IMG/VR virus record: IMGVR_UViG_3300043464_001630
Coordinates: 1 to 64,000 of that record
Direction: 5' to 3' (one strand)
DNA: 64,000 nucleotides
Both the position numbers and the translations under genes were made by a program. Shown here piece after piece: positions 3,059-51,561 of this stretch. The notes below the pieces were generated by a model that was not told the DNA's origin, searched no databases, and worked only from the letters and a program-made list of their open reading frames with translations. Numbering within the stretch: position 1 is the stretch's first letter; every line of letters starts with the position of its first letter.

Positions 3059-3958
3059 ATGAATGATTCTTTATTAATCTGGGAAGCTTATCAAAATAGT
3101 ATATCTAATATAGTATATCACGTATCTAGAAAGAAATTTGACGACATCTATGATTGGAGTCATTTTACAAAAAACATACATGCTGCAAAAGATATTATCA
3201 ATACTGATAAATCAGAAGGAAAATATGTCGAAGGCAGCACGTATTATGTTTATAAATATAAAATGAATCCAGATTTAAAACTCATGAGAAGTGTGGATAT
3301 TCATTCCGAACATGTTCCTCAATGGGGTAATTCTGGTAGATCAAATGATTGGAGTAAACATATTCAAGGTATGTTTTATCTTCAGCAAACAGAAGATACA
3401 CAATTTAGAACCTATGTAACAAACGCAGTTTTAAATGAATTAAAAAGTAGATACGACAATAATCCAGAGAGAAAAAAATTATTTGAATTAATTTTAAATT
3501 TTCTTAACAAGAATCCTAAATATATTAAAATCCCAGAAAGCCAAGGAATGGACTCTCATAAGGCTTGGAAACCAGTCCATAATTATTTCATTAAAATTTT
3601 AGATCCAAATAAGACTAAATCCACACGAGAACTCATGAATTTATATAGTACTATGGCGACGATAATAGATTCTCTACAAATGATTCTCATTCGAAACATC
3701 AGTCAAAATGATTATGATAATGTTAAGTTGTGGAAAGTTTGGATTTTTGAATCAGACGATGATAATATTCACGGAAATTTTTTTTACGAAAACCAAATTA
3801 ATAAAAAGTCGTTTATTAATAATCTAATAACGTCATATTATGATGGCGTTGTATATAATAATGAAGTTGAAGGTGGAGGAGATTCTTATATTTTATTTCA
3901 TCCTAAGAGGGATCTACAATTAATAAGCAGAGAGATTTTACAAAATTCAGAAAATTAA
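3059..3958 (+). CDS. MND-leader protein with ART-like cargo
   Basis: MNDSLLIWEAY leader; VYH...HF...YDGVVYNNEVEGGGDSYILF. Confidence 0.55.
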   Translation: MNDSLLIWEAYQNSISNIVYHVSRKKFDDIYDWSHFTKNIHAAKDIINTDKSEGKYVEGSTYYVYKYKMNPDLKLMRSVDIHSEHVPQWGNSGRSNDWSKHIQGMFYLQQTEDTQFRTYVTNAVLNELKSRYDNNPERKKLFELILNFLNKNPKYIKIPESQGMDSHKAWKPVHNYFIKILDPNKTKSTRELMNLYSTMATIIDSLQMILIRNISQNDYDNVKLWKVWIFESDDDNIHGNFFYENQINKKSFINNLITSYYDGVVYNNEVEGGGDSYILFHPKRDLQLISREILQNSEN

Positions 3959-3959
3959 T

Positions 3960-5054
3960 ATGATAAAGAGAGATAAACAGATTATATGGGAAAGATATTT
4001 AGAGATCCTAAAAGAATCTCGTGTGGAAAGGTATTTGAATATGTATAATAAATTATTCAAAATATTTCCAGATGCAAAAGCCCCAGATAGTGTATATAAT
4101 CCAGCTAATTGCGAATTAGATTCTAGTCATTATAACCATACAAGAACTAGAAATTTAATAGAATTTAATTTTTGTTTAAAAAATGTAATAGATAAACTTA
4201 GAAGAGATGATATTATTCAGTGGTATATTAAAAAAACAATAAATGAAACAATTTGTACAATAATTGATAAAAAAATTTTTAATATTCGTTTAAAAACTAG
4301 AGCAAGTGGTTCAAATATAGAATATTTTTTAAAAACCGAACACCCAGAAATTTATGAAGAGTTCATTAAATTACGTGATCTTAAAACGAGTTTTTTTGAT
4401 ATAGAGTATTACAGTGCAATAGAAGTTGGTACGGAAACTTTATTGGAAAAATTAGAACATTATATTGCGTTAAATATACAAGACATAAACAACTTCCGAT
4501 TTGTTAATCAATCTATCGAAGATGTTTTAGAAAAATTTCAAACAATTGAACGTGAATGGCTTAAATCTATTAATAGTGTAATGGATATTACGGATGATTT
4601 AAAAAGCAAAAGAGTTAAGACACTATTAAAAATTGACGAAAACAACGAATGGCAAATAATAGATAGTTCATTTTGTACAAAAGAAGGAAAAGCAATGGGT
4701 CATTGTGGGAATAATGTAACTGGTGGAATTGATGATAAAAACACGAAGTTACTCAGTTATCGAACTATAACTCATAAAGGAGGTAAAGTTATAGCTAAAC
4801 CACATTTAACTTTTATTTATCATTTAAATGATATGTCTTTGTCTGAAAGAAAAGGAGCACAAAACGATAAACCAGTTGAGAAATATCACGAAGCTATATT
4901 AAAATTGTTAATGTTAAAAAAAGATAATGATTTCTTTATTAAGAAACTTAAAAACGAAGGATATTTGCCGCAAAATAATTTCGAAATATCTGATTTATCC
5001 GAAAATAACAGAAAGATTCTTGAACAAAATAGACCGGATTTATTCGAGGAATAA
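3960..5054 (+). CDS. Variant MND-leader protein with PcfJ-like C-terminal domain
   Basis: DKQIIWERY leader; EGKAMGHCG...PHLT...ERKGAQNDKP. Confidence 0.45.
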   Translation: MIKRDKQIIWERYLEILKESRVERYLNMYNKLFKIFPDAKAPDSVYNPANCELDSSHYNHTRTRNLIEFNFCLKNVIDKLRRDDIIQWYIKKTINETICTIIDKKIFNIRLKTRASGSNIEYFLKTEHPEIYEEFIKLRDLKTSFFDIEYYSAIEVGTETLLEKLEHYIALNIQDINNFRFVNQSIEDVLEKFQTIEREWLKSINSVMDITDDLKSKRVKTLLKIDENNEWQIIDSSFCTKEGKAMGHCGNNVTGGIDDKNTKLLSYRTITHKGGKVIAKPHLTFIYHLNDMSLSERKGAQNDKPVEKYHEAILKLLMLKKDNDFFIKKLKNEGYLPQNNFEISDLSENNRKILEQNRPDLFEE

Positions 5055-5314
5055 AAATTATAAATAAATAATCGTATGAAGCAAGAATGGCTCGAATTTT
5101 TAAAAGAACAAGATCCCGAATTATATCTACAAGCAAAGAGTTATATCGAAAAACTAGAATCCGAATTAGAAGAAAAGAAGATTATAGTTGAAAGATACCA
5201 AAATCTCATAGCATGTAACGGATTTTTTGATGAGAAATAGTTGACAAATTAGGGATATGTGGTAAATTAGTTGTGTAAGTGAAAGCTTACTTGTTCTTTG
5301 AATAGATAAAAAAA

Positions 5315-5577: not shown

Positions 5578-5595
5578 CTTCTATTTGATTATCAA

Positions 5596-6555
5596 CTACT
5601 TACATAAATTTCTTTCTTTTAGTATTTTCTTATAAATTAATTTTAGATCCGGTACGGTATCAAAATCTATCCATAAGCATTTGTAATTATTTTTATTACA
5701 ATATTCTTCTAATGCTTTCTTTTTATGTGGTATGTGTAAATTGTATTTATGATTAGACTTTGATGTCCATTTTTGTTTAATCTCTACTATATGTGTTTGG
5801 TTATTAATATAACATATAAAATCTGGGTTGTATGTTTTATTTTTAATTCCGTCATTGTAAATTAATATATTTTTAAATCTTTCTATTGATACTGCATTTA
5901 GTTTGTCTATTAAATAGATTAATCCTGCTTTCTCTAAATTAGAATCTACTTCTATTGAAGTATTTTTATATGTAAAATGTTCTCTAGGTGTGGAGAAATT
6001 TCCATTCTTTTCTAAATATTTTTGTCTTTGTATGGAAATACTTAAAAATTTACAAGCTTCGCTACAAGTTTTTCGCTTTTTTTCTTTTGTACTATAAAAT
6101 TGTTTAGAACATACGGAACATACGTATTCTTGATTTGTATATTTTGAATATGTTTTACCTATATTGTTTATCCTTAGATGCTTAGTTGATTCGTATTTCT
6201 TTAATAAAGATTCCGAAGTTTTCTTTTTTGTTTCTTCTGTTATTATTCTGTTGGAATTATTAAATTTAGCTGAACAAGAACTAGAACAAAAGTAATTGTA
6301 AGTTTTTCCTTCTTTTAATTTCATTCTTTTATCTGCTGACTTTTCCAAAAACTTATCATATCCGATAACAATATTACATTGTTTACAGTGTTCTGGAGAT
6401 TCTAGATATTTTAATGTATTCTCTTCCTTTTGTTTTTTCCCGCGTTCTTTTATAAGAATAATATCCAAACCACTTCTTTTTACATGATGTGCTTTGTGTC
6501 CCTGTAAAGCCATTTTTTTATCAAACTCTTTATTACATATTTCGCATTTATACAT
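5596..6555 (-). CDS. Free-standing putative homing endonuclease (C2H2/Zn ribbons, NUMOD3-like, TnsA-like PD-(D/E)XK)
   Basis: YKCEIC...H...H, several CxxC, TEETKKKTSESL, DSNLE...YNPDF...IVEIKQ. Confidence 0.75.
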   Translation of the reverse strand: MYKCEICNKEFDKKMALQGHKAHHVKRSGLDIILIKERGKKQKEENTLKYLESPEHCKQCNIVIGYDKFLEKSADKRMKLKEGKTYNYFCSSSCSAKFNNSNRIITEETKKKTSESLLKKYESTKHLRINNIGKTYSKYTNQEYVCSVCSKQFYSTKEKKRKTCSEACKFLSISIQRQKYLEKNGNFSTPREHFTYKNTSIEVDSNLEKAGLIYLIDKLNAVSIERFKNILIYNDGIKNKTYNPDFICYINNQTHIVEIKQKWTSKSNHKYNLHIPHKKKALEEYCNKNNYKCLWIDFDTVPDLKLIYKKILKERNLCK

Positions 6556-6994: not shown

Positions 6995-7123
6995 AAACTT
7001 TCAGTAACCACAACCCCACTGGTATATAGGTCTTGTTATGATTGGAATGTAATAACATAGAAATCCTGCTGAAAACTAGCCACACATATTAATTTATGTG
7101 TGGCTTTTCTGTTAAATAATAAC

Positions 7124-8395
7124 ATGAATCGTAGAGATTTCATTTACACTGGGCTTGTAGGTGGATTAGGATTATCAATGGGTGACATCCTAAAATTACA
7201 AGCAGAATCCTCCTTGACTCCTAAAGCTCAGTCTGTTATTCATATCTTTTTACCGGGGGGTGCGGCATCACATGAAACGTTTGATCCACATCCACTTGCT
7301 CCTTCTGAGTATAGAGGCCCATTAAAAGCTATTCCTACTTCAGTAGTAGGACTACAATTCTCTGAATACTTACAGAAAACGGCAAAAATTGCAGATAAGC
7401 TCACAGTAGTACATTCCATGACACACGGAGAAGCCGCACACGAACGTGGGGTTACTTCTATGTTCACTGGCTATCGTCCATCTCCAGCATTAGAATATCC
7501 ATCATTTGGTTCTGTAATATCTAATCAATTAGGAGATAGAAATAATCTACCAGCATATGTTTGTATTCCACAGAAGATTGGTAACAATGGTAACGATCCA
7601 GCAGATAGTGGGTACTTATCGAAAGCATACGGCCCTTTTAGTTTAGGTTCTGATCCCGCCAACCTTGGATTTAAGGTTCGTGATTTAAATGTAGAAGTAG
7701 GATCAGAACGATTCGAAAGACGTAAATCTATTTTAGACACAGTAGATAGTCATTTTCGTTATTTAGAATCTAGTGATAACTTAGCAGCAATGGATACTTT
7801 CTATCAAAAGGCATTTGATTTAATATCTTCGCCAAAAGCTAAAGAAGCGTTTGCCTTGGATAAAGAACCCCAAGTGATGCGTGAAGCATACGGAATGAAC
7901 CAAGCAGGTCAGAGATTGTTAATGGCTCGTAGATTAGTAGAAGCAGGTGTAAGATTTGTTTCCGTAACTTATGGTGGATGGGATATGCATTCGGGGATTG
8001 CCAACGGAATAGGTAAACAACTACCCTCATTTGATCAGGCTTATGCAACACTCATTAATGATTTAGATCAGAGAGGAATGTTAGATTCAACACTAGTTAT
8101 GATCTCTTCTGAATTTGGTAGAACTCCGAAGATTAACAAAGATGCAGGGCGTGATCATTGGCCTAGAGTATTCTCTGTAGTGTTTGCTGGTGGTGGTTTT
8201 AAACGTGGTTATGTTTACGGTTCTTCTGATGCCACAGGAAGTGATGTAGAAAGTAATCCATTAACAGTAGAAAACCTAGCGGCTACAATGTATAATCAAT
8301 TAGGTATTGATCCAGAAACAAAACTCATGGCGGCAGGTGGAAGACCATCAGCTATTGTAAAAGATGGTACTGTAGTTAAAGATTTGTTAGTATAA
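7124..8395 (+). CDS. DUF1501 family protein (Tat-exported, alkaline phosphatase/sulfatase-like)
   Basis: MNRRDFI Tat motif; IFLPGGAASHETFDP, ARRLVEAGVRFV, GWDMH, SEFGRTP, GRDHWP; likely start ATG 7124 after TAAATA. Confidence 0.9.
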   Translation: MNRRDFIYTGLVGGLGLSMGDILKLQAESSLTPKAQSVIHIFLPGGAASHETFDPHPLAPSEYRGPLKAIPTSVVGLQFSEYLQKTAKIADKLTVVHSMTHGEAAHERGVTSMFTGYRPSPALEYPSFGSVISNQLGDRNNLPAYVCIPQKIGNNGNDPADSGYLSKAYGPFSLGSDPANLGFKVRDLNVEVGSERFERRKSILDTVDSHFRYLESSDNLAAMDTFYQKAFDLISSPKAKEAFALDKEPQVMREAYGMNQAGQRLLMARRLVEAGVRFVSVTYGGWDMHSGIANGIGKQLPSFDQAYATLINDLDQRGMLDSTLVMISSEFGRTPKINKDAGRDHWPRVFSVVFAGGGFKRGYVYGSSDATGSDVESNPLTVENLAATMYNQLGIDPETKLMAAGGRPSAIVKDGTVVKDLLV

Positions 8396-8403
8396 ATATT
8401 CTA

Positions 8404-9162
8404 ATGAATGATGATGATTTAATATTTGAAGCTTATCAAAATATATACGAAAGTGTAACTTTCAGTGTAGATGGGGGTAATCTATTTAATGTCGATAACA
8501 TTAATAATATCAATGATCTTGGTACTGCATTGCTTTATGGAGACAGAGATATAAAGGGAAGTTCTATTACTGAATTTATTAAATCCAATTTATCCGAACA
8601 AGAGTTTGAAGAATGGAAAAATAATAAAATATATGAATTTATAACAATGGATGGTTCAGAATTTGAAGCAGCAGAAGGAAATATAAATTTTTATACAGTT
8701 GGATTTCCGGAAAAAATAATACCTAAAGTTATATCTTTTATTAAGTATTTTATAGGTGAATACAACTTCAAGCTAACTTCAGAACCATATAAGGAGAGAT
8801 CAAATTTACATGAATCTGATGTTATTAGATTCCCAGTTCAAATAGTAACAAACAAGGAATCCGAAAATATACCAGAAGTAAATTTATCTAATAGAAACGC
8901 ATCTATTATTTTAATTAATATATTAAAATATCCCGAATCTGTTTTAGAAGATCATCAAATAAATTCAAGAGAATTATTAATGAAAATAGAAAACATAGAA
9001 GACAACGAAAAAAAGTTAAAATCTTATGTAGTAAAAAACGTAAATGACCGATTTACGGTTCTTGGATTAAGTGAAGAAAGAATTAAACGAATTTTATTTG
9101 ATTTAAAAAAATTAGCTCAATACGCGGTTGATAATCATTTCACTTATATAAAATTCGGTTAA
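8404..9162 (+). CDS. MND-leader hypothetical protein
   Basis: MNDDDLIFEAYQNIYE; TAAATA upstream. Confidence 0.55.
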   Translation: MNDDDLIFEAYQNIYESVTFSVDGGNLFNVDNINNINDLGTALLYGDRDIKGSSITEFIKSNLSEQEFEEWKNNKIYEFITMDGSEFEAAEGNINFYTVGFPEKIIPKVISFIKYFIGEYNFKLTSEPYKERSNLHESDVIRFPVQIVTNKESENIPEVNLSNRNASIILINILKYPESVLEDHQINSRELLMKIENIEDNEKKLKSYVVKNVNDRFTVLGLSEERIKRILFDLKKLAQYAVDNHFTYIKFG

Positions 9163-9170
9163 ATAAAATA

Positions 9171-9695
9171 ATGCTCATCGAACCAACAGAAATTCCAGAT
9201 GTTCTTCTCGTTACTCCTAAGGTCTTTAAAGACTCTCGTGGATATTTTCTAGAATCCTTTAATAATAAGCATTTACCATTTAATTTCGTACAAGATAATC
9301 AATCTTTTTCTTTAAAGAATACTATTAGAGGATTACATTATCAAGTAGTAAAACCACAAGGAAAACTAGTAAGAGTAGTTAAAGGTACTATTTTAGATGT
9401 AGCAGTAGACATTCGTAAAGATTCTCCTACATTCGGAGAATACGTAGCAGTAGAACTGTCTAGTGATAATTTTAAACAATTGTACGTTCCTGAAGGTTTT
9501 GCACACGGATTTTCTGTCTTATCAGAAGAAGCAGAAGTTCTTTACAAAACAACCGACTACTGGTACAAAGAATATGAACGTAGTATTAACTACAGTGATC
9601 CAGAATTAAACATAGATTGGAAAATTGAAGGTGTTCCTATGTTATCTGATAAAGATAGAGATGCAGTGTTATTAAAAGATGCTGAATATTTTTAA
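9171..9695 (+). CDS. rmlC: dTDP-4-dehydrorhamnose 3,5-epimerase
   Basis: DSRGYFLESF, QDNQSFS, RGLHYQ, QGKLVRV, PEGFAHGF. Confidence 0.95.
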   Translation: MLIEPTEIPDVLLVTPKVFKDSRGYFLESFNNKHLPFNFVQDNQSFSLKNTIRGLHYQVVKPQGKLVRVVKGTILDVAVDIRKDSPTFGEYVAVELSSDNFKQLYVPEGFAHGFSVLSEEAEVLYKTTDYWYKEYERSINYSDPELNIDWKIEGVPMLSDKDRDAVLLKDAEYF

Positions 9696-10173: not shown

Positions 10174-10776
10174 GTGAGACAAAATTATATTAAGATTTCT
10201 AAGCTAGCTAAAGATCTAGGAGTAACTAAACAAACTCTTTGGAACTGGAAATATGCTGGTGAAGTTGATTTTGTTAAAATAGGTGGGTTAAATTGTGTAA
10301 CTAAAGAAACATACAATAATCTATTAGGAATAGAAAACAAGAAAAAAGAATCTGTTGTGATTTATTGTAGGGTTTCTTCGACGGAAAATAAATCTAATAT
10401 AGAAACACAAAAACAAAGATTGTTAAATTATTGCAATGCAAAAGGTTACAAAGTATCTGATGTGATACAAGAGTTTGGTTCTGGTATCAACGATAAGAGA
10501 CCAAAACTCGAAAAATTATTAAAACAGCAAAATTTTACAAAACTAGTAGTAGAACATAAAGATCGTCTAACAAGAGTAGGATTTAATTATATCAATACAC
10601 TGCTAAACTTCAATCATATTGAGATTGAAGTAGTTAATTCTGTTGATGATGATAGAACTGATTTAATACAAGATTTCATATCAATTATTACATCTTATTG
10701 TGCTAGAATTTACGGCAACAGAAGATCAAAAAGAAAAACTGAACAATTAATAAAGGAGCTTGAATCCAATGAGTAG
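10174..10776 (+). CDS. tnpA: IS607 serine recombinase TnpA
   Basis: N-terminal HTH (LGVTKQTLWNW), IYCRVSS, GSGINDKR, VEHKDRLTR, DLIQDFISIITSYCARIYG. Confidence 0.93.
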   Translation: MRQNYIKISKLAKDLGVTKQTLWNWKYAGEVDFVKIGGLNCVTKETYNNLLGIENKKKESVVIYCRVSSTENKSNIETQKQRLLNYCNAKGYKVSDVIQEFGSGINDKRPKLEKLLKQQNFTKLVVEHKDRLTRVGFNYINTLLNFNHIEIEVVNSVDDDRTDLIQDFISIITSYCARIYGNRRSKRKTEQLIKELESNE

Positions 10777-12355
10777 ATGCACAAAGAGTTATTCTTTCTA
10801 CTCGAAAGATCTTAACATAGGCAAATTCAATCTCTTTTTGAAGAAAGCCGAAGCAGTCAGAGATTATAAGAATGCTTTATCTGTCGAAATTTCATCTAAT
10901 CTCTTGAAGTACACTGAAGTTTCTAAGTTTGATTTCCTTAAAATGTTTGGTACGAAAACTAATTATTTGAATCCTAGCTCATTAATGAGAGGAAACGAAA
11001 TACAAAAAGCTGTAGCGGATGTGTTTGAAGCTTATCAAAATAAAATAACACAAATTAAACAAAAAATGTCTTTCTTTGTTCAAAAAGGAAAAGAGGTAGA
11101 ATTTTACAAAAGAAACACAAAAAATAATAAAAAAGGTGATGTTAGAAGTTATGAAATAAAAACTAAAAATACTCCATTGACAAAAACAATCACATTTCTA
11201 TCTCGTTATGGTTCCGAAAACACACTAGATTATGTCAATAAAAGAGCGAATCAAAATGATGACAAACAAGATTTCTATAAGACACTAAAAATACATATTC
11301 AAAAGTTTGGCTTAGAAAGATTGTCGAAACTTGCTTACAGCAAAAGAACACAAGTTCTAAATAAGTATAATTATCCAATCACATTCACCTCTCTATCTTA
11401 TCGTTCTGCTCTTCAGACGAACGATCCTTTGATTCAAAATTCCAAGAACAAAACATTTTCAAATGGAACTATTTCAATACCAAGCTTTAATGGAAAACAT
11501 ATGTTTGTTCCGACTACATTCAATGTAAAACATCATGGTCATTTGAATCAATATAAATCAAAAGAGTATATAATTTGTATCGAACAAAAGCGAAAAAGAA
11601 TCAGACTGATTACTACAAAAGAAACAGAAGAAACTATTTCTCCAGAAGGAATAAATTATTTAGGTGTTGACACCAACGTCAAACATAATCTATTTGCTAC
11701 TTCAGATGGAATGAATATTGACATGGACAGAGATTTGTTTCATGGTTATATTGCTTTTCTAAAGAAATACCAAGACAAGAAAGAACATACTTCTGGAGAA
11801 GATCAACAATTTGAACTATGGCAAGAACGTGTTCAGTGTATGCTCAAAAAGAAAGCTAGAGAGTTAGTTGATGTGGCTATAGCTTCTGGTAAGAATCATA
11901 TCATCATGGAAGATCTTGGTAACTTTGGTAAATCTTACACTAAATCAGAAGAGTTCGAAGGATTCAAATATTCTAGATTAACACGATTACTCAATCTTTC
12001 TTCTCTAAACAAAATTGTTAAAGGCATTTGTAAGAAGCTTGGTGTTAGACTAACTCTCATTCCTTCTCATTATACATCTCAGTGGTGCTTTGACTGTGGA
12101 CACATAGACAAAGCTAACAGAACCACCCAAGAAATTTTCCAATGTGTTTGTTGCAATGTAACAGCAAATTCAGACTTTCATTCTTCACGAGCCATCCTTA
12201 GGATAGGTTCTTCAGACGTTCTGAAGAGCAATATGCTCGTGATGGATAAATCATTCGATTGGATTCCTAAGAAACTCTCAAAAGGTTTCATAAGAAAACA
12301 ATTGGAAGAAATAATTCCTAAAACAACTTTTCAGTTGAATTGTCAAACTTTATAG
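10760..12355 (+). CDS. tnpB: TnpB RNA-guided RuvC nuclease (long, 531 aa)
   Basis: LGVD (RuvC-I), IMEDL (RuvC-II), YTSQWCFDCGH...CVCC Zn ribbon, NSD (RuvC-III). Confidence 0.88.
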   Translation: MNPMSRCTKSYSFYSKDLNIGKFNLFLKKAEAVRDYKNALSVEISSNLLKYTEVSKFDFLKMFGTKTNYLNPSSLMRGNEIQKAVADVFEAYQNKITQIKQKMSFFVQKGKEVEFYKRNTKNNKKGDVRSYEIKTKNTPLTKTITFLSRYGSENTLDYVNKRANQNDDKQDFYKTLKIHIQKFGLERLSKLAYSKRTQVLNKYNYPITFTSLSYRSALQTNDPLIQNSKNKTFSNGTISIPSFNGKHMFVPTTFNVKHHGHLNQYKSKEYIICIEQKRKRIRLITTKETEETISPEGINYLGVDTNVKHNLFATSDGMNIDMDRDLFHGYIAFLKKYQDKKEHTSGEDQQFELWQERVQCMLKKKARELVDVAIASGKNHIIMEDLGNFGKSYTKSEEFEGFKYSRLTRLLNLSSLNKIVKGICKKLGVRLTLIPSHYTSQWCFDCGHIDKANRTTQEIFQCVCCNVTANSDFHSSRAILRIGSSDVLKSNMLVMDKSFDWIPKKLSKGFIRKQLEEIIPKTTFQLNCQTL

Positions 12356-14033: not shown

Positions 14034-14269
14034 AGAGATATTTAAGAATTTTCGGATAAATAACAACATGGCTTCTGAATTCTTAAATTTAATTGAATAT
14101 GTTTTAAACGAGCACAAAGGCGACGAGGCAATGGATCAGAAGCTAAAGAAAACTTTCAAAAAGATCGTCACCAAGAAAATAGACGACGATAAGAAAGTAG
14201 AAGAATTGTTTAAAGCCGTTCAGCGGCACTTAAAAGCTAGCGGGCAACAGTAATTCACTAAATAATGTA

Positions 14270-15502
14270 ATGAATGATTGTGAATTGATCTGGGAATCTT
14301 ATTTAAATAAGATTTTATTAGAGAATGACGGAATTACTGATTTAACCTCAGATTACGTTAATAAGTTAAAGCACGATTACGAAGTTTTAATTAAAAACAT
14401 TAATAATAAATTAACTCCAGAAAACGCTTCAAAACTAAAAAATGCGTTTGATATTTCAGCAGACGATTACGACAACAAAACCACATTAATTTATAAATGG
14501 GGCGATAAAAAACGCGAAGATACTGAATATGTAAGAATTCCTATGTGGAATTTACATATAAACTTAGGAAGAATGCAGAATATTTTAGGAGAATATAGCA
14601 AAAATAAAGACGAATCAAGTTTAAAGAAATTAATTAATTTAAAAAAATCTACCACAAAAATAGCTAATGATGTATGGAATAAATTAAATCTGTTTATTTC
14701 TAATAATCCAAACATGGATTTGAAATTAAATCCAGAACAATACGTTTTAAAATTAGAAGGAATTCCTTTCACATTTATAGGTTTAACTGAAAAAAACAAA
14801 TCAAGGTTACCCAGATTAAAATATTATGTAAACAAATACATAGAAAGAGCTAAAAAAGTAGCTCCTTTAATGATAAAATATAGCTTACCAGTAGAAATTC
14901 ATATGGAATTTGATACTCATGATAGTGGTGATGCTGCTGGTCTGTACTATTTCAATAAAATAATATTAACTGCATGGGCTTCTAAAAGAGAAGACGAACG
15001 TTCATTCGTCAAAACATTAGCACATGAAATGGGTCATCATATTTATAAATCTTTATCAGAAAATAGTAGGCAATTTTGGTACGATTTCATAATCAGCGAT
15101 AAAATAGAAATAGATGTAGAAGAAATCATTAATATGATGCATGAAAATGAACTTCCTCGTCATTTCGAAAATCGAATGAAAAATGAAAATCCAATGTTAT
15201 ACATTCAAGCAGAAACTTTATTCCATACAAATAATTCAATGAATGTGTATGATTTGCAATCATTGATTGATGCATACAAAGAAAATAGAATACCGAAAAG
15301 CGTAGTCGTTCCAAACACACCAATTACTGGATATGCTGCTAAAAATTCAGAAGAAGCATTTTGCGAGGCATTAGGAATGTATGTTGCTTACGGAAATAGA
15401 GCAGTACCCGAGAAAATAAAAAACATTCTGAATGTAATCCTAGCACCAAGTGAAAAATTCCGACTTGGAGAATCCACAATTCTCCACAAAAAAGTTGACT
15501 AG
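14270..15502 (+). CDS. MND-leader zincin metallopeptidase (anthrax lethal factor/MPTase-like)
   Basis: MNDCELIWESY...ILLE; LAHEMGH and ITGYAAKNSEEAFCEA. Confidence 0.65.
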   Translation: MNDCELIWESYLNKILLENDGITDLTSDYVNKLKHDYEVLIKNINNKLTPENASKLKNAFDISADDYDNKTTLIYKWGDKKREDTEYVRIPMWNLHINLGRMQNILGEYSKNKDESSLKKLINLKKSTTKIANDVWNKLNLFISNNPNMDLKLNPEQYVLKLEGIPFTFIGLTEKNKSRLPRLKYYVNKYIERAKKVAPLMIKYSLPVEIHMEFDTHDSGDAAGLYYFNKIILTAWASKREDERSFVKTLAHEMGHHIYKSLSENSRQFWYDFIISDKIEIDVEEIINMMHENELPRHFENRMKNENPMLYIQAETLFHTNNSMNVYDLQSLIDAYKENRIPKSVVVPNTPITGYAAKNSEEAFCEALGMYVAYGNRAVPEKIKNILNVILAPSEKFRLGESTILHKKVD

Positions 15503-34145: not shown

Positions 34146-34447
34146 AAAGTTCTAAAGTTCTGCTGGAATTAGCCGATATATAAGGTACACCTCAGTAACC
34201 AGAAAACATATTATGAGCGGATACTACGACGACAACTTCGGACGGTGGGAGGACATGAACGATCCAGAAATGGTAGACTTCTATCACCAAGTTCAGAAAG
34301 AATCTGAATGGAAAACTTGCAAACAGTGCGAAGAACGTGTATTCTTGCGGCGGAATTATGTCATTTGTAATTCTTGTGCCGATCAAAACGAAAGGTTCTA
34401 AATAGAATTAATTAATTATGTTTAGATGTGTTTAAATAAATATCCTC

Positions 34448-34819
34448 ATGAACGACGAACAATTGATTTGGGAGGCATATGAAAACAATAATCAGTTTTT
34501 ATATCATGCCACATACAAGCCACATTTGAAGAAGATAATGCAGTATGGCTTGGGAGGATCGCCAAAGATTAGAAAGAATTGGGAGGATTCTAAACAAGGC
34601 GTGGTGTATTTAGCTTATGATGCAAATGTAGCAGAATCTTATGCTGAAAGTTCTGATGATGTACCAGAATCCTATTTAGATAATATCATCATATTAAGAA
34701 TTGATACTTCTAAACTAGATAGAAATAATCTAAAGAGAGATCAGAATGTAATTGACGGAGAAGATACATTAGAGTATCACGGGATTATACCACCGGACGC
34801 AATAGAAAGAATTAAATAA
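34448..34819 (+). CDS. MND-leader Tpt1/ART-like protein
   Basis: MNDEQLIWEAY; LYHAT...IMQYGL, VYLA, IIPP. Confidence 0.6.
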   Translation: MNDEQLIWEAYENNNQFLYHATYKPHLKKIMQYGLGGSPKIRKNWEDSKQGVVYLAYDANVAESYAESSDDVPESYLDNIIILRIDTSKLDRNNLKRDQNVIDGEDTLEYHGIIPPDAIERIK

Positions 34820-38250: not shown

Positions 38251-38290
38251 AAGCTAGATGTAGATATCGGAAGATGATTAAATAAGTATC

Positions 38291-38725
38291 ATGAATGACG
38301 AAGAACTGATATGGGAAGCTTATAAAGCACAGGAAGATATAGAACTAGGTATTGATGACCTTGTGCTTCGTAAACGTAAGCTCAGAGGAGAAGGAATCAG
38401 TTACGTCATTTACGATAAAAAACAAACACCTACGAAGATGCTAGGACATCTCAGTGGCTTTGAGGATAAGTTTGGTAAGCACGATGGAATGTTCCATCTA
38501 TACAAGACTGAACTGACCGAAGCGACTCGTAATGATCCACAGTACCAGAACCGTGGAATATACAGAATTGCTGTACAAAAGGTAGCTAACCTTTATCCGA
38601 ATGGATTATATGTGAGTCAATTCGAAGCATCGCCACAATTAAGGAATTCATTAAAACGAATGAGTACATATGAGTTCTTAAATGATGATCGTTATATAGA
38701 TGTGTTACATATCAAGCCAGAATAA
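38291..38725 (+). CDS. MND-leader GNAT-like protein
   Basis: MNDEELIWEAY; PQYQNRGIY motif A-like. Confidence 0.5.
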   Translation: MNDEELIWEAYKAQEDIELGIDDLVLRKRKLRGEGISYVIYDKKQTPTKMLGHLSGFEDKFGKHDGMFHLYKTELTEATRNDPQYQNRGIYRIAVQKVANLYPNGLYVSQFEASPQLRNSLKRMSTYEFLNDDRYIDVLHIKPE

Positions 38726-38734
38726 ATAATCGTT

Positions 38735-39301
38735 ATGAACGACGAAGAATTGATATGGGATAATTATTACAAATCTATTTTAACCGAGGGATTTGATAGC
38801 GATAACATAAAAGTTTTGGATAGATTTTTAAGAACTTATTATTCCGAAAGCCGCGTTGTTCTCACAGGAGAAGAAGAAATAATAAATTTTAATATAAAAC
38901 AAGTCGAAAGACATCCAAACTTTAATCCAAAGCCACAAGGATTATGGTACAGCAAAGGAAACGAATGGGCTGATTTTCTAAAATACGATCCAGCTAATTG
39001 GGCAGACACATATAACAATGTATTTCTTTTAGATATTGATCTCAAGAAGATACTAAAAATAGATTCTTATGAAAAGCTTCTTTCGTTTAGCAGGAAGTAT
39101 TCAGACGGCAAGGAATATGTCGATTGGGAAGCAGTTGAGAATTTAGGATATCATGGAGTAGAAATTATACCGTACCAAGGAGAAGCCAGACATAACATAC
39201 CTTGGTATTACAGATGGGATGTTGCTTCTGGTTGCATATGGAATACCGATTGTATTTTAAAATCTACGAAGGTTTATCCAAGAACAAAGAACAAAAGGTA
39301 A
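38735..39301 (+). CDS. MND-leader hypothetical protein (possible ART-like)
   Basis: MNDEELIWDNYYKSILTE; KPQGLWYS...GYHGVEI...WDVASGCIWN. Confidence 0.5.
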   Translation: MNDEELIWDNYYKSILTEGFDSDNIKVLDRFLRTYYSESRVVLTGEEEIINFNIKQVERHPNFNPKPQGLWYSKGNEWADFLKYDPANWADTYNNVFLLDIDLKKILKIDSYEKLLSFSRKYSDGKEYVDWEAVENLGYHGVEIIPYQGEARHNIPWYYRWDVASGCIWNTDCILKSTKVYPRTKNKR

Positions 39302-39509
39302 TTGATATATAATAGAGGATCTACTATTATACTTAAATACGATTAATAACTACTAATAGACAATCCTCTATTAATAAACTAGCTACAATAAGTCTGATTC
39401 TTGTATAATCACTCTTAATAAATACAGAAAACCGCTCCACTTTTAGACAAAAAGTCCGGACTAGAGACAACGGATTGTCTAGTATCGTGATAAGTATTAA
39501 ATAGTAATC

Positions 39510-39971
39510 ATGAATGACGAAGAATTGATTTGGGAGGCATACAATAATATTGGAATCCATATTAAGGACAAGGTTAAGGGTAAGGTGTATGACTTCACTG
39601 GAAAGATTCTCAGGGGGGAGAAGACCATAGAAACTCGTCCAGCCCCAACCCTGAGTCCGTATATCGGTCAACGAGTGGGAATCATCAGCACTGGCACCAG
39701 CAAGGGCACACCCGCGAAATCTTACCTTGTGGGGTCTGCGATCATTGGCGAACCAATAGTCTACCACAACGAGGAAGAGTTCGACAGGGACTACGACAAG
39801 CACCTAGTGGGCAAGGATGATAAAGATTTCTATATTAAGACAGGGAAGGTAAAGTACGGCTATCCTATGCTCGATGTCAGACGCATGGAACCCGTGGAAC
39901 TGACAGCACCTACTGACCGGAAAGCGGCAGGCTTTAGCATAATTAGAAGACGAATAGATTACGAATTGTAA
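39510..39971 (+). CDS. MND-leader ASCH/PUA domain protein
   Basis: MNDEELIWEAY; ILRGEKTIETR. Confidence 0.7.
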   Translation: MNDEELIWEAYNNIGIHIKDKVKGKVYDFTGKILRGEKTIETRPAPTLSPYIGQRVGIISTGTSKGTPAKSYLVGSAIIGEPIVYHNEEEFDRDYDKHLVGKDDKDFYIKTGKVKYGYPMLDVRRMEPVELTAPTDRKAAGFSIIRRRIDYEL

Positions 39972-40124: not shown

Positions 40125-40319
40125 ATGAATATAGTCTTATGGAAAGCTGAATGGAAAAGCCCGCATGTTACAAGTTTGGAAATAGGAATTAGATATAATT
40201 CTGAAATTACTAAAAGATTTAAATTAAAAAATGTCTCGATTTATGAAATAATTGATGAGCAACTATTCATGTTAGCAGTCATCAAGCACAATATAGACTT
40301 TGAGAAGGTAGAGTTATAG
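40125..40319 (+). CDS. KYG-family small protein
   Basis: EIIDEQLFMLAVIKHNIDF. Confidence 0.6.
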   Translation: MNIVLWKAEWKSPHVTSLEIGIRYNSEITKRFKLKNVSIYEIIDEQLFMLAVIKHNIDFEKVEL

Positions 40320-40667
40320 ATGTAGGGAGAAAGATGTAGTAATAAAGAATACTATTAACTTTTATGTCCTAGACACATGCCTGTTATCTGTTATCTGATT
40401 AATAACAGAAGATCTAAAGAGGAATAAACTAATAGAAGATCCTCTATTACTTAAATATCTACTAATATCTACTAATAAACAATCCTCTATTAATTATTAG
40501 TATCCATCTATTGTGTTATTCCTTTAAACTAACACATAATACTAGATAATAGTATTAAAAACTACGAATAATTAGGGATAGCGCCCCACTTTGCCCCACT
40601 TTGAGACAAAAAGGCTGGACTAGAGACAACGAACTGTCTAGTATCGGCGTAAGTATTAAATAATCGT

Positions 40668-41090
40668 ATGAACGACGAGCGGTTGATATGGGAAGCCTAC
40701 AAAAGTAGAGAGGTAGAAACTATGGAATTTCCTATGTTATCTAAACCTAATGGAGTGTCGTATCGAGGCAAACCAGATTGGAAAAAATTTAAAGTAAATG
40801 GCTATTACAGGGATGGTGATGTATTAAGATACATATATTCACAACACAAAGAATTCGAAGACGACCACCGAGTAAAAAGAATTTATAAATTAATATCAAT
40901 AGATCCAAATAAATTAGAACCCAGCGAATGGGAAATAGATGATTATAAAGTAGAAGATTTGTCTAAGTCTAATGAACCATATCCTCCAATCGTAATCAAT
41001 AAAAACAAATCTATCGTAGATGGCGGACACAGATTAGAAGCAGCAAAAGTTAGAGGAGATAAAGAAATTCTAGTATTCTTACAACAATAA
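40668..41090 (+). CDS. MND-leader ParB/Srx domain protein
   Basis: MNDERLIWEAY; YPPIVI...IVDGGHRLEAA. Confidence 0.7.
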   Translation: MNDERLIWEAYKSREVETMEFPMLSKPNGVSYRGKPDWKKFKVNGYYRDGDVLRYIYSQHKEFEDDHRVKRIYKLISIDPNKLEPSEWEIDDYKVEDLSKSNEPYPPIVINKNKSIVDGGHRLEAAKVRGDKEILVFLQQ

Positions 41091-42465: not shown

Positions 42466-45400
42466 TGTTCCATGTGGAACATTCTCCAACGGAGAGAAGA
42501 GAGGATTCTGGGGAGAGTATAGTGGTTATGTTTAGAATGAATATGTTCTTATGCACATAATGCATAATGATTATTAGATATGCTTATAATGCATAAGAAC
42601 TATTAGATATGCACATAATACATGTGTGTTATTAGGTATGCTTAAATTGCATATTAGTTTCGCTTATCTGGGGTTTTCTCGTGGTTTAGGTCAGACCCTC
42701 CCCCCACCTCAAGGTTAATAAGAATCCTCTACTAATGGAAGGTTTATTTTCACTTTTTTTGGGTTTGTTTAGAAAAGGTCAGACCCTCCCCCCGTACCTC
42801 TAGGTTAGTATGCGATCCAGTATTTTAGCAAGAAAAAAGAAAAATAAAAATAGTGCTAAAGAAAAAAGATTTTCAGTTTTTCCTAAAGAGTTTTTTTCAA
42901 ATGCCTATTAAAAGGAGCCATGCAATTTACAAATTCCATTTGCTTAGAGTTAGCTACCCTTGCCTCTCTCAATCAGTTAGAGAAGCTCGCCGAGCGCCTG
43001 ACTGAATTGCAGCCCTTAGTTAAACAGGGACGCGGAACATGGGGGGAGAATATTGAAAAGATGTTGGCTTTTCTCTCTGACCGAAAGCCCCGCTTCTCCA
43101 TCTTTGCCAAGGGAAACGGAAAACTGCCGTTTGCTGCGTTTTCTGTGCTTCCGCTTGTTTCCTGCCCCGGTTCTGGTGCTTGTAAAAACTGGTGCTATTC
43201 TCTGAAAGCATGGCGATATCCAGCGGCTTTCTTTCGCCAGTTGCAGAACCTAATTCTTTTGATGTCCCCAGAGGGGCGGAAAACTGTCGCAGAGGCATGG
43301 AACAAGCTCCGCAAGGGGGCGCATGTTCGGTTGTACGTTGATGGGGACATTCACTCTCTTGAGATTCTAGAATATTGGCAGAACCTTTGTCGCCAGCGTT
43401 CAGATTTGCAGGTTTATGGGTATTCTAAAAGCTGGGGAATATTCTTGCGTTTCGATGGAGAATGGGCGTCGAACTATACTCTCAACCTTTCAAGCGGTTC
43501 GAAGTTTGTAAACAGCCCTAAAGTAAAAGAACAAATTTCCGCCCTTCCGATTGTGCGGGGTGAGTTTGTGGCTGTTCCCGTGGCTTCGAAGGCTCCAAAG
43601 CGCAACCTTAAAACGGGTCAGCCTCTGAACCCCGCAGCATGGCAGTCTCATAGGTTAGAGGTTCTAGCCGCTGCAAAGAAGCTAGGAATGGGTAAAGTGT
43701 TTGTTTGTCCGGGTTTGTGTGGATTCTGTGCAAACGGAAAACACGCTTGTGGCAATCGTGCATTTAACGGAATTCCGATTGTGATTGGAATCCATTAAAA
43801 TAGTTCTAAAGAATCCTCTATTCTTTGCCGATTAGTATATACCGGAAGGTTCGATCCCTTCCGGTTCACTCAGAAACCCAAAAAACAGCCATGATGCTCA
43901 AAGCCAAAAAATCGAAAAAGTCACAAAAAATTGTAATTGCATTCCCGATTGCAAACACTAATGGTCAAATGGTTTCGATTCATACAACCGTTGGAAAGTA
44001 TTCTTTTATTCTTGATTACTGGGCTGGTGATGCCGTCGAAAACGCTCTCAAGAGAATCGAGGAAGAGAATGTCACCGGAATCGGTTTTACGACAGCAAAC
44101 GGAACACCGATTCAAGTAAGGTTGCTAGATTAGCAGGTTTTAGAGAATCCCCTACTCTTTACGAAGGGCGGGGGATTCTCCGTTGTTCCACATGGAACAT
44201 TATAGGAACAGATAATAGGTTAAACCCTCCCGTCCTTCCTCTAGGTTAATAAGGATTCTCTATTACTACAACAGAAAAGAAAAAAAAGTTTCTGCTAAAG
44301 TTTTCTAGAAACCTGTTACTGATTCTTTGTTCCACATGGAACATTCCAGAATCTAGTGAGTATACAAACCCTCCCGTCACACCTATAGGTTAATAGAGAA
44401 TCCTCTATTCTTACAACCTTTTTCTTTTTTATTTTTCTGCTAAAGTCTTTCACCTTTCTTGCCTATTAGTAGTTATGCCGAAACATTCCTCTGACATTGC
44501 TTACGAGTTGACAAACCTCTTGAAGTTTGAAAGCATGAAAAGCGTTGGCGAATTTAGTGAAGCCTACGTCATCGGATACTTGAGCAGTATCTTGAAGAAT
44601 CTTGCAAAGTATCCTGAGGTTCAGCGTGAACTGGAAAAAGAAGTAGAAAGAATAAAAAAGTACTAAAGACGCTCTGCTGAAAAACCGACTACTCTGTATG
44701 ACTGTAAAACTGATCAACGCCGCAATCAAACACCTCAACCTCGAAATCATCAAAGGAAGCGGATACGTTTATTTTCTTGACTTGACTACTGGATATCAGG
44801 TGGGCGACTCTGTGCATATTGCATACCTCAATCATGTCAGCTTGGATCGGTGGATCGAAGAAGCCGAAGGTGCAAGAAAAGACGAAGAAGTAAAAAAGTT
44901 CTAAAGAATCCTCTACAAATACCGACTACTATATACCAGAAGGTCCAATCCCTTCTGGTTCACTCAGAAACCTTAGTACATTATGGAAAAACTCACCTTG
45001 GAAGAAATCACCCGCATTGCTGAAAAACTGGGAGTCAAGTTGGACGGGAATCCAACGCCAGCGCAGAAAGCCGAAATCGCAAACATACTTGTCACCCTTT
45101 TGGAAGTTGAAGCGAAACTGAAAAAGAACTAAAGTCTCTCCGAGAAAAACCGATTACTATATACCGGAAGGTTCCAGTCCTTCCGGTTCTCAACCCAAAA
45201 ACCAAACTACATTCTATGATCACCAAAAACGAAAACGGCACACTCTCAATCGGCGACATTCAAATCGTTTCTTCTTATAACAAAGAAACAAAGCAGCATA
45301 CCTTCAATCTGCTTAAAGCGGGTTGTGTTCCCGTTCAGCATATCGGGAATCACCTGACGCTCCGAAACAATATCACGAAACTGGTGGAACAAGTAGAAGC

Positions 45401-49273: not shown

Positions 49274-50160
49274 CCTTCAGAGTTGCGGCTCAGGGGAGTT
49301 CAATCCTCTCCTGAGCCCTTCGCGTTTAAATGCCCTTTAAAAGGCTCCACCCCCTTCGTCAGTATCTCCACCGCCCCCCGCCCCCTATAGGCCATTAGAA
49401 ACCCCCGTAGCGTTCCGCCATTAGGGGATCATGATTGTCCCCTCAGTTCCGTTCACACAATAAACTCACGTTGGTAATAGATTCGCGTTCACATTACACA
49501 CTCAACCCACTCTAATAAACTCATGAGAGACACACACTTCCCTAACTTTGTTCACCTTATCCTTTCCAATAATCCTTCAGCCTATGCCAAGCAAGTGCTT
49601 ATTAGAGAGTCTAGTCTGTACTACAGAGACTTCTATTCCTCTTGCTACGTCCTGACTCTGGACGAAAAAGACTTCGCCATTAACAGAGCGGTGGAAAGGT
49701 TCTCTGAGTATGTAAACCTTTCGAAATCAACGCTAGACTCACTGGACGCGGTTAAGACTGCTGTCGCTCAGGTGCTTCAAGAATCTTATACTGAGTCTAT
49801 TCAAAGAACTTTCAAAGCTAAGGGGTTGGCTATGGTATAGGCGACCTCTCCTAATACGGGGCTCCCTTTTTCGGAAGGGGGTTCCCGTTTCAGGAAGCGT
49901 GCCACCTAGCGAAAAAGAAAGTTTTATTTTCTACTAAAGTTTTTGGGAGAACGGGGCTCTTCTATGCAGGTCGAGCATTTTAATTTGCGGCTTGCGTAAG
50001 TTGCATGACTGGTCGGGTGAGGGGGCATTGCCAAAATTTTTTTTGCAAATTTCTGGAAATTTTACTAAAGGCGATTTTTTAATATACAATCCTCTATTAT
50101 TTCCAGATCTTTTTTTGATATTTTAATTTTATATTTTTGTTGAGTAAAATATACGAAATT

Positions 50161-50541
50161 CTAATTTTCCATTCTACTACTCCATCCGTCTACGTCGTCG
50201 GTTAATCTTGGGATATATCCGCCTATGCTTTGTGCGAACTGTTCTCCTTCGTATGATCGTCTGGAAGAATGTTCTGGTACTGGTTGATCGTTTTGTTCTG
50301 CCCATTCTGTGGCAGTTTCCCATATATGCGTAGCTACTCCTTGTCTCCTATACGGTTCGCCTACATATAACCTTTCTACTTCTCCATCATCTTTAGACCA
50401 TTCAATAAATCCCACGGCTCCCTTCTTATTAAAGAAATCTATTCTGTTATTATATTCGGTTTCTGAATGTTTAAATCTTAACGTATCCCAGTCTAATGCT
50501 ATTTTTTTATAACTCTCCCATATCATTTGTTCGTCATTCAT
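50161..50541 (-). CDS. MND-leader GNAT acetyltransferase
   Basis: MNDEQMIWESY; LYVGEPYRRQGVAT. Confidence 0.75.
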   Translation of the reverse strand: MNDEQMIWESYKKIALDWDTLRFKHSETEYNNRIDFFNKKGAVGFIEWSKDDGEVERLYVGEPYRRQGVATHIWETATEWAEQNDQPVPEHSSRRSYEGEQFAQSIGGYIPRLTDDVDGWSSRMEN

Positions 50542-50583
50542 AATTTTATTTAACCTTTAAACTATAATAATTTTATTTAACCT

Positions 50584-51561
50584 TTAAACTATATCGTATA
50601 GTATATCACCTATGCAATTTTCTATGGCCGTGTCGATTTGATCAGCTATATATTCTTCGATGTTTATTAGATTTTTTATATTAAAATCAGCGAACCAAGA
50701 TTCCATCTTTTTAAACATCTTTTCGTCTATCATTTGGTTAAAGGTTATTTTTCCGGTTTGCATTAACTGAGCTACTAATTCTTCTTTCATGTCAGATACT
50801 ATTAATTGTTTATTTCTTGCCGAGCCGAATGTAAAAAAGTCCATGTAAAAATTTTCTGGATCTCTATAGTATTTTCCAGCATGTATGTTATTTGTTGTTA
50901 TATTTTTTAAAATTGGATAATCGTATAGGTTTATCGAAGGATCGCCATATATTGATAAGGATTCTTTAAACATGGTATGATAATCTTTGAGTACCTTTCT
51001 TATATTATTATCGATATCTACGTTTTCCCTATGTGCTAGAATAGCATGTCCGCATTTGTGTGATCGTATCCAAGAAGAAAAAGCCATAATACCCGATCTT
51101 TCTTCTTGACCAGAAGGTGTCATTATTACGGTAATTCCGTTTGGACTCGATAATCTCTTTTTTATTGATGGATCTCCTTCTACTAAATTTTGAATATCAG
51201 ATTTGTTTATGATATGTTTGATACCAGAATCGTACTTAGATTCTTTTTCTAAATTAGCATCTATCAGTCTCCATAATAAAGGAGGTTTTCCTTGGGTTTG
51301 TCTTCTGCGGTCTAAGCCTTTTGCCGTTCCGGTTTGTACCGTGGATTTCATCAGTTCTCTGGCTTTTTCGCTGCTCCATGCATTTATATCAGTTTTTCTT
51401 GATTTAGGCTCGTTAATTATTTTTCTTGAATTTTTTTGTACAGGTTTATATTCGGATTTTAATTTATCAGTTATTTCTGGATCGTCGCCCATGAATTCCA
51501 GAGTAGCGGGAACTTCAGATATTAACTTATATCTTTCCCAGATCATTTGTTCGTCATTCAT
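50584..51561 (-). CDS. MND-leader protein with HxxGH zincin-like motif
   Basis: MNDEQMIWERY..ISE; WIRSHKCGHAI...EELVAQ; TATAAATA upstream. Confidence 0.55.
   Translation of the reverse strand: MNDEQMIWERYKLISEVPATLEFMGDDPEITDKLKSEYKPVQKNSRKIINEPKSRKTDINAWSSEKARELMKSTVQTGTAKGLDRRRQTQGKPPLLWRLIDANLEKESKYDSGIKHIINKSDIQNLVEGDPSIKKRLSSPNGITVIMTPSGQEERSGIMAFSSWIRSHKCGHAILAHRENVDIDNNIRKVLKDYHTMFKESLSIYGDPSINLYDYPILKNITTNNIHAGKYYRDPENFYMDFFTFGSARNKQLIVSDMKEELVAQLMQTGKITFNQMIDEKMFKKMESWFADFNIKNLINIEEYIADQIDTAIENCIGDILYDIV

Follow-up and report, generated by a model that had tools for sequence, protein, structure and literature searches.

A short N-terminal leader shared by unrelated proteins of a T4-like freshwater jumbo phage: a candidate capsid-targeting propeptide

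In coliphages, a few small internal proteins are known to carry the classic capsid targeting sequence of phage T4; for the internal proteins (IPs) IPI, IPII and IPIII it was reportedly described by Mullaney and Black in 1996. The present study concerns an 11-residue N-terminal leader, MND..(L/M)I(W/F)(E/D).Y, which opens ten open reading frames (ORFs) in a 64,000-nucleotide stretch of DNA (the window; positions 1 to 64,000 of IMG/VR record IMGVR_UViG_3300043464_001630) and is a candidate for a tag of the same kind. The complete record is a 236,391-bp contig of an uncultivated, T4-like freshwater jumbo phage. Encapsulin cargo-loading peptides offer another parallel, as a short terminal peptide loads diverse enzymes into an HK97-fold shell; they differ in being usually C-terminal and uncleaved, and they serve a bacterial nanocompartment without DNA and without injection. 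The T4 internal proteins have been reviewed as diverse defence proteins in which the targeting sequence alone is conserved (PMC3012670). For the loading of foreign proteins, the first ten residues of IPIII are enough; targeting depends on upstream hydrophobic residues and processing on Ile at P3 and Glu at P1, and Asp at P1 stops processing, not targeting (PMC9026906).

The leader ORFs of the window are 3059, 8404, 14270, 34448, 38291, 38735, 39510 and 40668 on the plus strand, and 50541 and 51561 on the minus strand (named by their start positions; Table 1). A degenerate DNA pattern for the leader peptide occurs ten times in the window against 0.00 expected (100 shuffles), and a six-frame scan showed that the core motif is confined to these N-termini, save one chance match outside any ORF start. 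Stop codons are located 3–7 codons upstream of the leader starts, which are therefore true N-termini. One further ORF, 3960, starts MIKRDKQIIWERY; since its orthologue in a sister genome starts MNDKHIIWERY, it is a real, decayed member of the set. A leader hidden Markov model separated both groups from noise, scoring the canonical ten at 27–33 bits and 3960 at 17.5 bits, with the noise lower. Beyond residue 13, no window cargo matches another in BLASTP at E≤1e-3. An earlier note on this DNA, made from the letters alone, had claimed a shared leader on the ten ORFs with 3960 as a variant, and complete divergence of the proteins after it; these observations bear it out on all of these points.

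Pattern scans of viral and metagenomic contigs yielded 94 distinct leader proteins with 46 BLAST-unrelated cargo clusters. This wider set was gathered with a pattern requiring the leader residues, so that their invariance is partly built in; the informative signs of peptide conservation are the synonymous sites and the decayed copies. Third positions of the codons are almost unconstrained (AAT/AAC 58:42, GAT/GAC 55:45, ATA/ATC/ATT, GAA/GAG), while the amino acids are fixed; selection therefore acts on the peptide. The motifs ILLE, ILTE, IYE and ISE, spotted by the earlier note soon after some leaders, turned out to be part of a general trend: a second [LIV]xE ending at residues 14–24 is present in 28 of 46 cargo-cluster representatives, compared with 16% of control windows. 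In the AlphaFold 2 models of 3059 (pLDDT 63) and of the 39510 family (pLDDT 49), both poor, residues 3–12 are predicted to be helical.

The leader has the format of the N-terminal propeptides in the T4 record, where gp21 begins MNEPQLLIE↓TW, gp24 MAKINELLRE↓S and IPII/IPIII MKTYQEFIAE↓A (the arrow marks the cut). L6-I7-W8-E9 is followed by Ala or Ser in 36 of the 46 families. MNDEQLIWE↓AY, the leader seen most often, agrees with the gp21 propeptide in length and register, with five of nine residues identical and two conservative, an alignment too short to prove homology. The gp21 and gp24 propeptides are 9–10 residues long, and that of gp21 shares with the leader the arrangement M-N-acidic-x-Q-L-(L/I)-x-E9 with an aromatic residue two positions on; unlike the leader, both stand on single structural proteins and are not reused on many cargos. 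Only the core E-hydrophobic-I-x-E↓A is shared with MKTYQEFIAE, which is too short for statistics; the gp21 propeptide is the nearer of the two to the leader. The likeliest cut would lie inside the leader, at I-W-E9↓A, the downstream ILxE being a putative second site in about 60% of families. The three leaders with Asp9 (38735, p718 and L062) all have a second (I/L)LxE a few residues downstream.

A T4-type head module (L005) is encoded on the same 236-kb contig, outside the window; it includes a gp23-family capsid protein, a gp20-type portal and a prohead protease (Table 1). The protease shares 34% identity with T4 gp21, the LNH and SSR motifs being aligned; it starts MSLRLIVE8, without the MND leader. 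In T4, exactly 65 N-terminal residues of gp23 are removed (PMC9958956). Residues L63, E65 and A66 of T4 gp23 fall in invariant alignment columns, and the site here reads C-L-R-E↓A-N-V; the scaffold-position protein, encoded just upstream of the capsid gene, contains 16 [LI]xE motifs against 6.3 expected. Scaffold candidates of L005 are encoded at 1706–2590 and 2635–3270. Because the gp23 site is conserved and the scaffold-position protein is enriched in [LI]xE, the T4 protease cutting rule seems to be kept in this phage.

Leader-type proteins are also encoded within the head module. The eleventh canonical leader gene, found in a pattern scan of the whole contig that returned the ten of the window and this one, encodes a 529-aa PcfJ protein (Pfam PcfJ E=4e-7) and adjoins the portal gene. 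Protein p718 (MLMNDENSIFDIYYNRILLE) is encoded between the portal and protease genes, and p341 (MTTDSVEIFENYLKSLNE↓A) is divergently encoded beside the protease gene, a position that is the same in three genomes. The p341 of L019 carries the canonical MNDENLIFEKYLNILAE↓A, and all 18 homologues of the p341 family, with identity down to 54%, retain [IM][FY]E.Y..SL.E↓A. The inventory per genome is 11 canonical and three decayed leader proteins. As a separate observation, the L005 portal carries an intein splicing domain (PF14890, E=1.5e-7, residues 372–479), and its Portal_T4 match is split in two (the best part covering residues 93–363); the L019 portal (603 aa) matches in one stretch.

A TAAATA box precedes the ATG of all ten canonical leader genes in the window, as the earlier note had described for all but 3960. 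In seven genes it ends 5 nt before the start codon and in three genes 6 nt, which leaves no room for a Shine–Dalgarno sequence in between, and the base preceding it is not conserved. In the region of 33–42 kb, the box is present solely at the five leader genes located there. Across the window, TAAATA-N5-ATG occurs 23 times against 1.87 expected. The portable promoter-plus-leader module proposed by the earlier note is to be amended here: every canonical leader has its box, but the box is not reserved for the module, as about 15 of the 23 occurrences precede non-leader genes. Since the portal, protease and other head genes of three genomes also carry TAAATA-N5-ATG, it is best read as a general late-gene start signal, related to the T4 box TATAAATA but abutting the start codon, and the leader genes would accordingly be expressed late. 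A TATAAATA-like −10 box upstream of structural genes, a feature of the T4-type late promoter, is present here.

The window leader proteins have 123–410 aa and at most one recognisable domain each; no MuF domain was found among the 46 representatives (Pfam). Leader genes often form arrays of three to five neighbours, each with its own box. Two sister genomes have five cargos in common and differ in the others (the sister contig has 242,607 bp, with 76–85% identity in alignable parts). Homologues of the cargos outside the clade are without the leader, and among 185,579 species genomes the leader pattern is found at chance level. In the leader island, genes are followed by an intergenic element of about 42 nt with a weak 7-bp hairpin (AATAGAG...CTCTATT; six copies). 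A 70-nt repeat with a 10-bp palindrome (ACTAGAGACA...TGTCTAGT), present at 39434–39503 and 40593–40662, runs into the late boxes of 39510 and 40668. Both elements may be cassette borders or regulatory sites. A terminator reading of the intergenic elements near leader genes was rejected, as they fold only into weak hairpins.

Taken together, MND..LIWE.Y is probably a T4-type capsid-targeting propeptide, carried by proteins that would be expressed late, docked in the prohead core, cleaved behind Glu9, about Glu17 or both, and delivered together with the DNA. The leader genes would be transcribed late from the TAAATA box 5–6 nt before the ATG. The 11-residue, probably helical leader would then attach the newly made protein to the scaffolding core while the prohead assembles, and the gp21-type protease would free the cargo in the head by a cut behind Glu9 (L-I-W-E↓A), behind a second (I/L)-x-E near residue 17, or both. 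At infection, the cargo enzymes would exit with the DNA and act before phage gene expression. The cargos envisaged are ADP-ribosyltransferase (ART)/Tpt1-like, GNAT, ParB/Srx-like, PcfJ-like and Zn-peptidase-like proteins, together with many without a known fold. Since a short tag would suffice, new cargos could be recruited by adding the box and leader before any gene, giving leader-gene islands that differ between sister phages. The capsid targeting suggested by the earlier note is thus in keeping with the T4-type head and protease, the kept L-x-E↓A, the propeptide format, the head-module members, the shared start signal and the turnover of cargos; we infer timing, packaging, cleavage, injection and cargo functions from the sequence.

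Several results weigh against this. The leader cannot be aligned with the T4 IP targeting sequence beyond the core given above, and its best-conserved residue, Tyr11, lies beyond the proposed cut; either recognition extends across the cut, or cleavage takes place elsewhere than at the first site. In mature cargos, [LI]xE motifs are not depleted (z=−0.4; controls +0.2). A tblastn search with T4 gp55 gave no match in the DNA searched, which included about 100 kb of this genome. A megablast of 10 kb against cultured phages gave no match, and there is no cultured relative. Pfam matches are absent for about 38 of the 46 cargo representatives, and most of the cargo functions are leads.

The leader might instead be a docking or sorting tag for another destination, such as a different part of the virion, a phage or host partner, or a membrane or compartment, with the resemblance to T4 being coincidental. 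Such a coincidence would be eased by the shortness of the leader and by a similarity to the T4 propeptide of about five of nine residues, and the strict retention of Tyr11, past the supposed cut, likewise speaks for this account. It is nevertheless rather unlikely, as the leader ends in a motif that is cut by the genome's own protease family and kept in the capsid protein, three genomes encode leader-type proteins amid their portal, protease and capsid genes, and the start signal of the leader genes is also that of head genes; moreover, the leader is acidic and non-hydrophobic, which sets it apart from Sec or Tat signals. As a second alternative, the leader could chiefly be an inhibitory or regulatory propeptide without a role in targeting, which would keep potentially toxic enzymes (ART-like, peptidase, nuclease-like) inactive or unstable in the producing cell until a protease removes it; this would explain the protease motif in the leader and suit those cargos that resemble potentially cell-harming enzymes. 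Yet one 11-residue helix is not expected to inhibit 46 unrelated folds, and non-enzymatic proteins of the head module are tagged as well. As the T4 protease works inside proheads (PMC9958956), cleavage would still imply entry into the head, and this explanation appears quite improbable.

Conservation could alternatively act at the level of the nucleic acid, the first 33 nt serving as a translation-start element of late mRNAs whose 5′ untranslated region is nearly absent, or as a recombination handle by which gene cassettes are shuffled, and the peptide being a by-product. In favour of this are the closeness of TAAATA to the ATG (5–6 nt) without a Shine–Dalgarno sequence, leader arrays flanked by repeated intergenic elements, and upstream repeats that reach past the leader at 39510 and 40668. 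However, TAAATA-N5-ATG also stands before the head genes and about 15 others that have no leader, synonymous third positions are nearly free under fixed amino acids, and the decayed copies retain I(W/F)E.Y while their DNA diverges. Recombination may well spread the module, yet this leaves selection on the peptide unexplained, and a purely nucleic-acid role is very improbable. Hardly credible is descent from one old paralogous family whose C-terminal parts have diverged past recognition. Although most cargos are without a recognisable family, the recognisable ones differ in fold (GNAT, Tpt1/ART, ParB_N, PcfJ and zincin), the domains of 34448 and 38735 are widespread without the leader and their alignments start directly after it, and one orthologue bears a different leader.

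If the leader is a capsid-targeting propeptide, the T4 IPs are the nearest counterpart. In both systems, a short N-terminal tag stands on unrelated proteins, the prohead is of the gp20/gp21/gp22/gp23 type, the tag ends in (L/I)-x-E↓A around a core E-(F/L)-I-x-E↓A, and the cargo set varies among related phages while the tag is conserved. The differences are that the tag here is MNDEELIWEAY, with 11 canonical and three decayed copies per genome rather than three as in T4; that the cargos, of 120–530 aa and in several cases enzyme-like, are unlike the small basic T4 IPs; that about 60% of families have a second cleavage-type site; and that the tag is tightly coupled to the late box, 5–6 nt from the ATG. 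The scale, the enzyme-like cargos and the distance from the coliphage model are the notable novelties relative to the T4 IP system. The ADP-ribosyltransferase Alt of T4, which modifies host proteins, is packaged in the head, trimmed by gp21 and injected with the DNA (PMC5512222, PMC9958956); 34448, for its part, is a minimal 123-aa protein with a predicted Tpt1/ART-superfamily domain.

Jumbo phages with a T4-related prohead protease also include phiKZ, 201phi2-1 and SPN3US, in which cleavage takes place after Glu; many of their head-internal proteins have N-terminal propeptides for which a role in targeting is assumed, and identical N-termini are shared by some paralogues (PMC5694885). Their motif, in contrast, is (A/S/G)-x-E, and most of their propeptides exceed 100 residues. 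We know of no description, for phages of this kind, of one short tag that dozens of unrelated cargos have in common. MuF-fused effectors, the Dar proteins of P1 and polyvalent proteins also represent early-acting effectors carried in the capsid (PMC5512222), and the polyvalent repertoire overlaps with that of the leader proteins in ART, ParB-like, Zn-peptidase, methyltransferase and acetyltransferase domains (PMC5512222). MuF and polyvalent effectors are joined to a structural domain, or to one another in one giant polypeptide, whereas here they would be ‘unbundled’ into separate small proteins, each with its own tag and promoter. Tentatively, the leader may be regarded as an address label readable from the sequence, by which at least 46 families of injected proteins, about 38 of them without a Pfam match, could already be listed. 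If so, the set of injected effectors of a whole phage clade could be read from sequence, including dozens of uncharacterised proteins that would probably act within seconds of the start of infection, and the families would form a rich, unbiased source of new host-takeover and anti-defence functions. As a short tag, the leader would also serve to load foreign proteins into the phages of non-model hosts, and it would connect tagged single-domain effectors to the giant polyvalent proteins that other phages carry.

The cargo assignments of the earlier note vary in how well they hold. Two GNAT acetyltransferases are retained, that of 50541 securely by its Pfam match and that of 38291 by Atlas features and fold. 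The segment TAGTTTAAAGGTTAAATAAAATT, which includes the late box, is tandemly duplicated before the 50541 gene (50542–50600, minus strand). The Tpt1/ART-like character of 34448 also stands. A profile of 42 homologues matched Tpt1/KptA RNA 2′-phosphotransferase in the PDB (E=6e-4; DarT, 0.4), the Atlas fold match is PTS_2-RNA (TM 0.61), and within the family H20 is invariant, with Y54 and E67 nearly so; the protein is assigned to the Tpt1/ART superfamily, on its H-Y-E (Tpt1/PARP/DarT-like) side. Without the leader, this domain occurs in 626 cluster representatives, alone or within proteins of up to 1662 aa, and the homologue alignments begin at about residue 16, directly after the leader.

The lethal-factor-like HEXXH peptidase proposed for 14270 keeps its HEMGH motif and a sub-threshold match to Pfam DUF5700 (E=1.7e-4), which weakly suggest a peptidase; the resemblance to lethal factor was not confirmed. 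Its orthologue (L003:2370, minus strand) is 65% identical. The ParB/Srx assignment of 40668 draws on the DGGHR motif and a weak PHROG match, and the ASCH assignment of 39510 on a marginal Pfam match (Table 1); a phmmer search of the PDB with 14270, 40668 and 39510 gave nothing useful. The cargo of 39510 is the most widespread family, with 10 members. For 3960, a PcfJ-like nature is suggested by a weak match to the PcfJ region of the 529-aa L005 protein. The ART-like reading of 3059 survives as an Atlas lead towards RES, ART-PolyVal and AcrIF11-type ADP-ribosyltransferases (score 0.88–0.92); Pfam gave no match, and a Foldseek search with the AlphaFold 2 model found none below E=0.1. Homologues of 3059 at 42–45% identity retain a near-identical leader.

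Table 1. Positions of the leader genes and of other features. Coordinates refer to the window, or to L005 where stated.
Feature	Position	Strand	Details
3059: TAAATA (3048-3053), leader MNDSLLIWEAY (3059-3091)	3048..3958	+	299-aa cargo
3960: decayed leader MIKRDKQIIWERYLEILKE, no TAAATA box	3960..5054	+	364-aa cargo, weakly PcfJ-like; orthologue L018:1984-3078(-)
8404: TAAATA, leader MNDDDLIFEAY (F variant), second site IYE16	8393..9162	+	252-aa cargo without recognised fold
14270: TAAATA, leader MNDCELIWESY..ILLE18	14259..15502	+	410-aa cargo, HEMGH zincin motif
34448: TAAATA, leader MNDEQLIWEAY	34437..34819	+	123 aa, predicted Tpt1/ART-superfamily domain from about residue 16
38291: TAAATA (N6), leader MNDEELIWEAY	38279..38725	+	144-aa GNAT-like cargo (Atlas features and structure)
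38735: TAAATA (N6), leader MNDEELIWDNY (Asp9), second site ILTE18	38723..39301	+	188-aa cargo (phrog_8582)
39510: TAAATA (N6), leader MNDEELIWEAY	39498..39971	+	153-aa cargo, possibly ASCH-like (Pfam E=0.1)
40668: TAAATA, leader MNDERLIWEAY	40657..41090	+	140-aa cargo, ParB/Srx-type DGGHR motif (PHROG ParB-like E about 1e-3)
50541: TAAATA (tandemly duplicated upstream segment), leader MNDEQMIWESY	50161..50552	-	126-aa GNAT (Pfam Acetyltransf_1 E=1.7e-8)
51561: TAAATA, leader MNDEQMIWERY, second site ISE16	50584..51572	-	325-aa cargo without recognised fold; orthologues L007:2453(+), L016, L037
2910: second-class leader MNKFDKLVEKILEE, TAAATA box	2899..3050	+	46-aa basic protein (pI 9.8)
53982: second-class leader MKFDDIVKQILED, TAAATA box	53971..54239	+	85-aa basic protein (pI 9.9)
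gp23-family capsid protein	L005		Pfam PF07068 E=6e-87
T4-type (gp20) portal	L005:9971-12205	-	PF07230 E=7e-94; 745 aa
Peptidase_S77 prohead protease	L005:3282-3950		PF03420 E=3e-28
Intergenic element of about 42 nt, copies	39340-39390, 40425-40510, 41106-41210, 41568-41609		
(T)TCTAAAG(T)TC motif regions	29640-32380, 42890-42920, 43794-45190		

A second leader class, M(N)KFDx(L/I)Vxx(I/L)L(x)E, stands directly behind TAAATA-N5-ATG on two basic proteins of the window (Table 1). Looser versions are found in ORF 14068 (MASEFLNLIEYVLNE; 14057–14253, plus strand) and in ORF 14033 (MSEFGLFGRILEKIEKE; 13344–14044, minus strand). Beyond the window, the MKFD-type leader occurs on unrelated proteins of 59–600 aa in 43 stretches from about 40 viral contigs with low GC and lengths reaching about 210 kb (L077–L116). 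It is closer than the MND type to the T4 sequences MKTYQEFIAE and MKTFKEF. Close homologues of the 38735 cargo carry the MND leader, one at 50% identity carries the MKFD-type MKFDKLIDRLIKE, and those at 30–43% identity have none. The two classes, swapped on one cargo, could represent two loading routes, copy-number classes or release timings in one head, for which T4 biology has no described counterpart.

The sequencing runs found with the sequence of this phage are DNA runs from lake-water metagenomes, and no RNA run appeared among them. A tblastn search with the helicase against cultured phages gave distant matches only (identity ≤39%); a 21-aa leader stretch gave none at E≤10, a weak test with so short a query. 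A literature string search with peptides of both leader classes found no paper. No Shine–Dalgarno sequences were seen before genes anywhere in the window, the upstream regions being A-rich, and the one true leader copy in the species genomes (L076) is present on a 4.4-kb contig binned with a Saprospiraceae genome; together, these give a weak hint that the host belongs to the Bacteroidota. A giant eukaryotic virus was considered as the source, given the TAAATA beside the ATG, a C2H2 finger and a papain-like peptidase, and was ruled out by the T4-type head module and phage gene content. The putative finger is a weak C2H2 zinc-finger match in a 319-aa protein (5596–6555, minus strand), and the papain-family (C1) cysteine peptidase is encoded behind a late box (17069–17998, plus strand). 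A tRNA scan and an Rfam scan of the window found nothing.

Other features of the window include two DUF1501 (sulfatase-like) proteins, encoded at 7100–8395 (plus strand, E=3e-114) and 54244–55608 (plus strand, E=8e-132; Pfam), both behind TAAATA-N5-ATG. The former starts MNRRDFIYTGLVGGLGL, which resembles a twin-arginine export signal. The DUF1501 genes are unusual auxiliary genes for a phage. A TnpB/Cas12f-like protein is encoded amid late-type genes (10760–12355, plus strand; PHROG transposase E=8e-19, Cas12f1-like TNB E=3e-9), and the product of 9171–9695 (plus strand) has an N-terminus that, by eye only, resembles a dTDP-sugar epimerase.

The sequence (T)TCTAAAG(T)TC, followed after about 10 nt by CTGCCGATTA, is located just upstream of the small genes 29672, 31340, 31546, 32131, 32380 and 42920, and probably represents a different (early or middle) promoter class. 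Copies of the motif at 43.8–45.2 kb have a G+C-rich hairpin behind them, CCGGAAGGTTCGATCCCTTCCGG, with a loop like a tRNA T-loop; ARAGORN and Rfam found nothing at these hairpins. Another 70-nt repeat is present in six copies at 35424–36628 and 40245–40314, which are 61–74% identical to the reference copy. Five of the copies are spaced 164–533 nt apart at small-ORF junctions, which suggests a tandem family of small paralogous genes. A 46-nt AT-rich repeat (TATGCACATAATGCATAA...) occurs in three overlapping copies with a 29-nt period at 42550–42653, in the intergenic region upstream of the divergent gene 42565 (minus strand).

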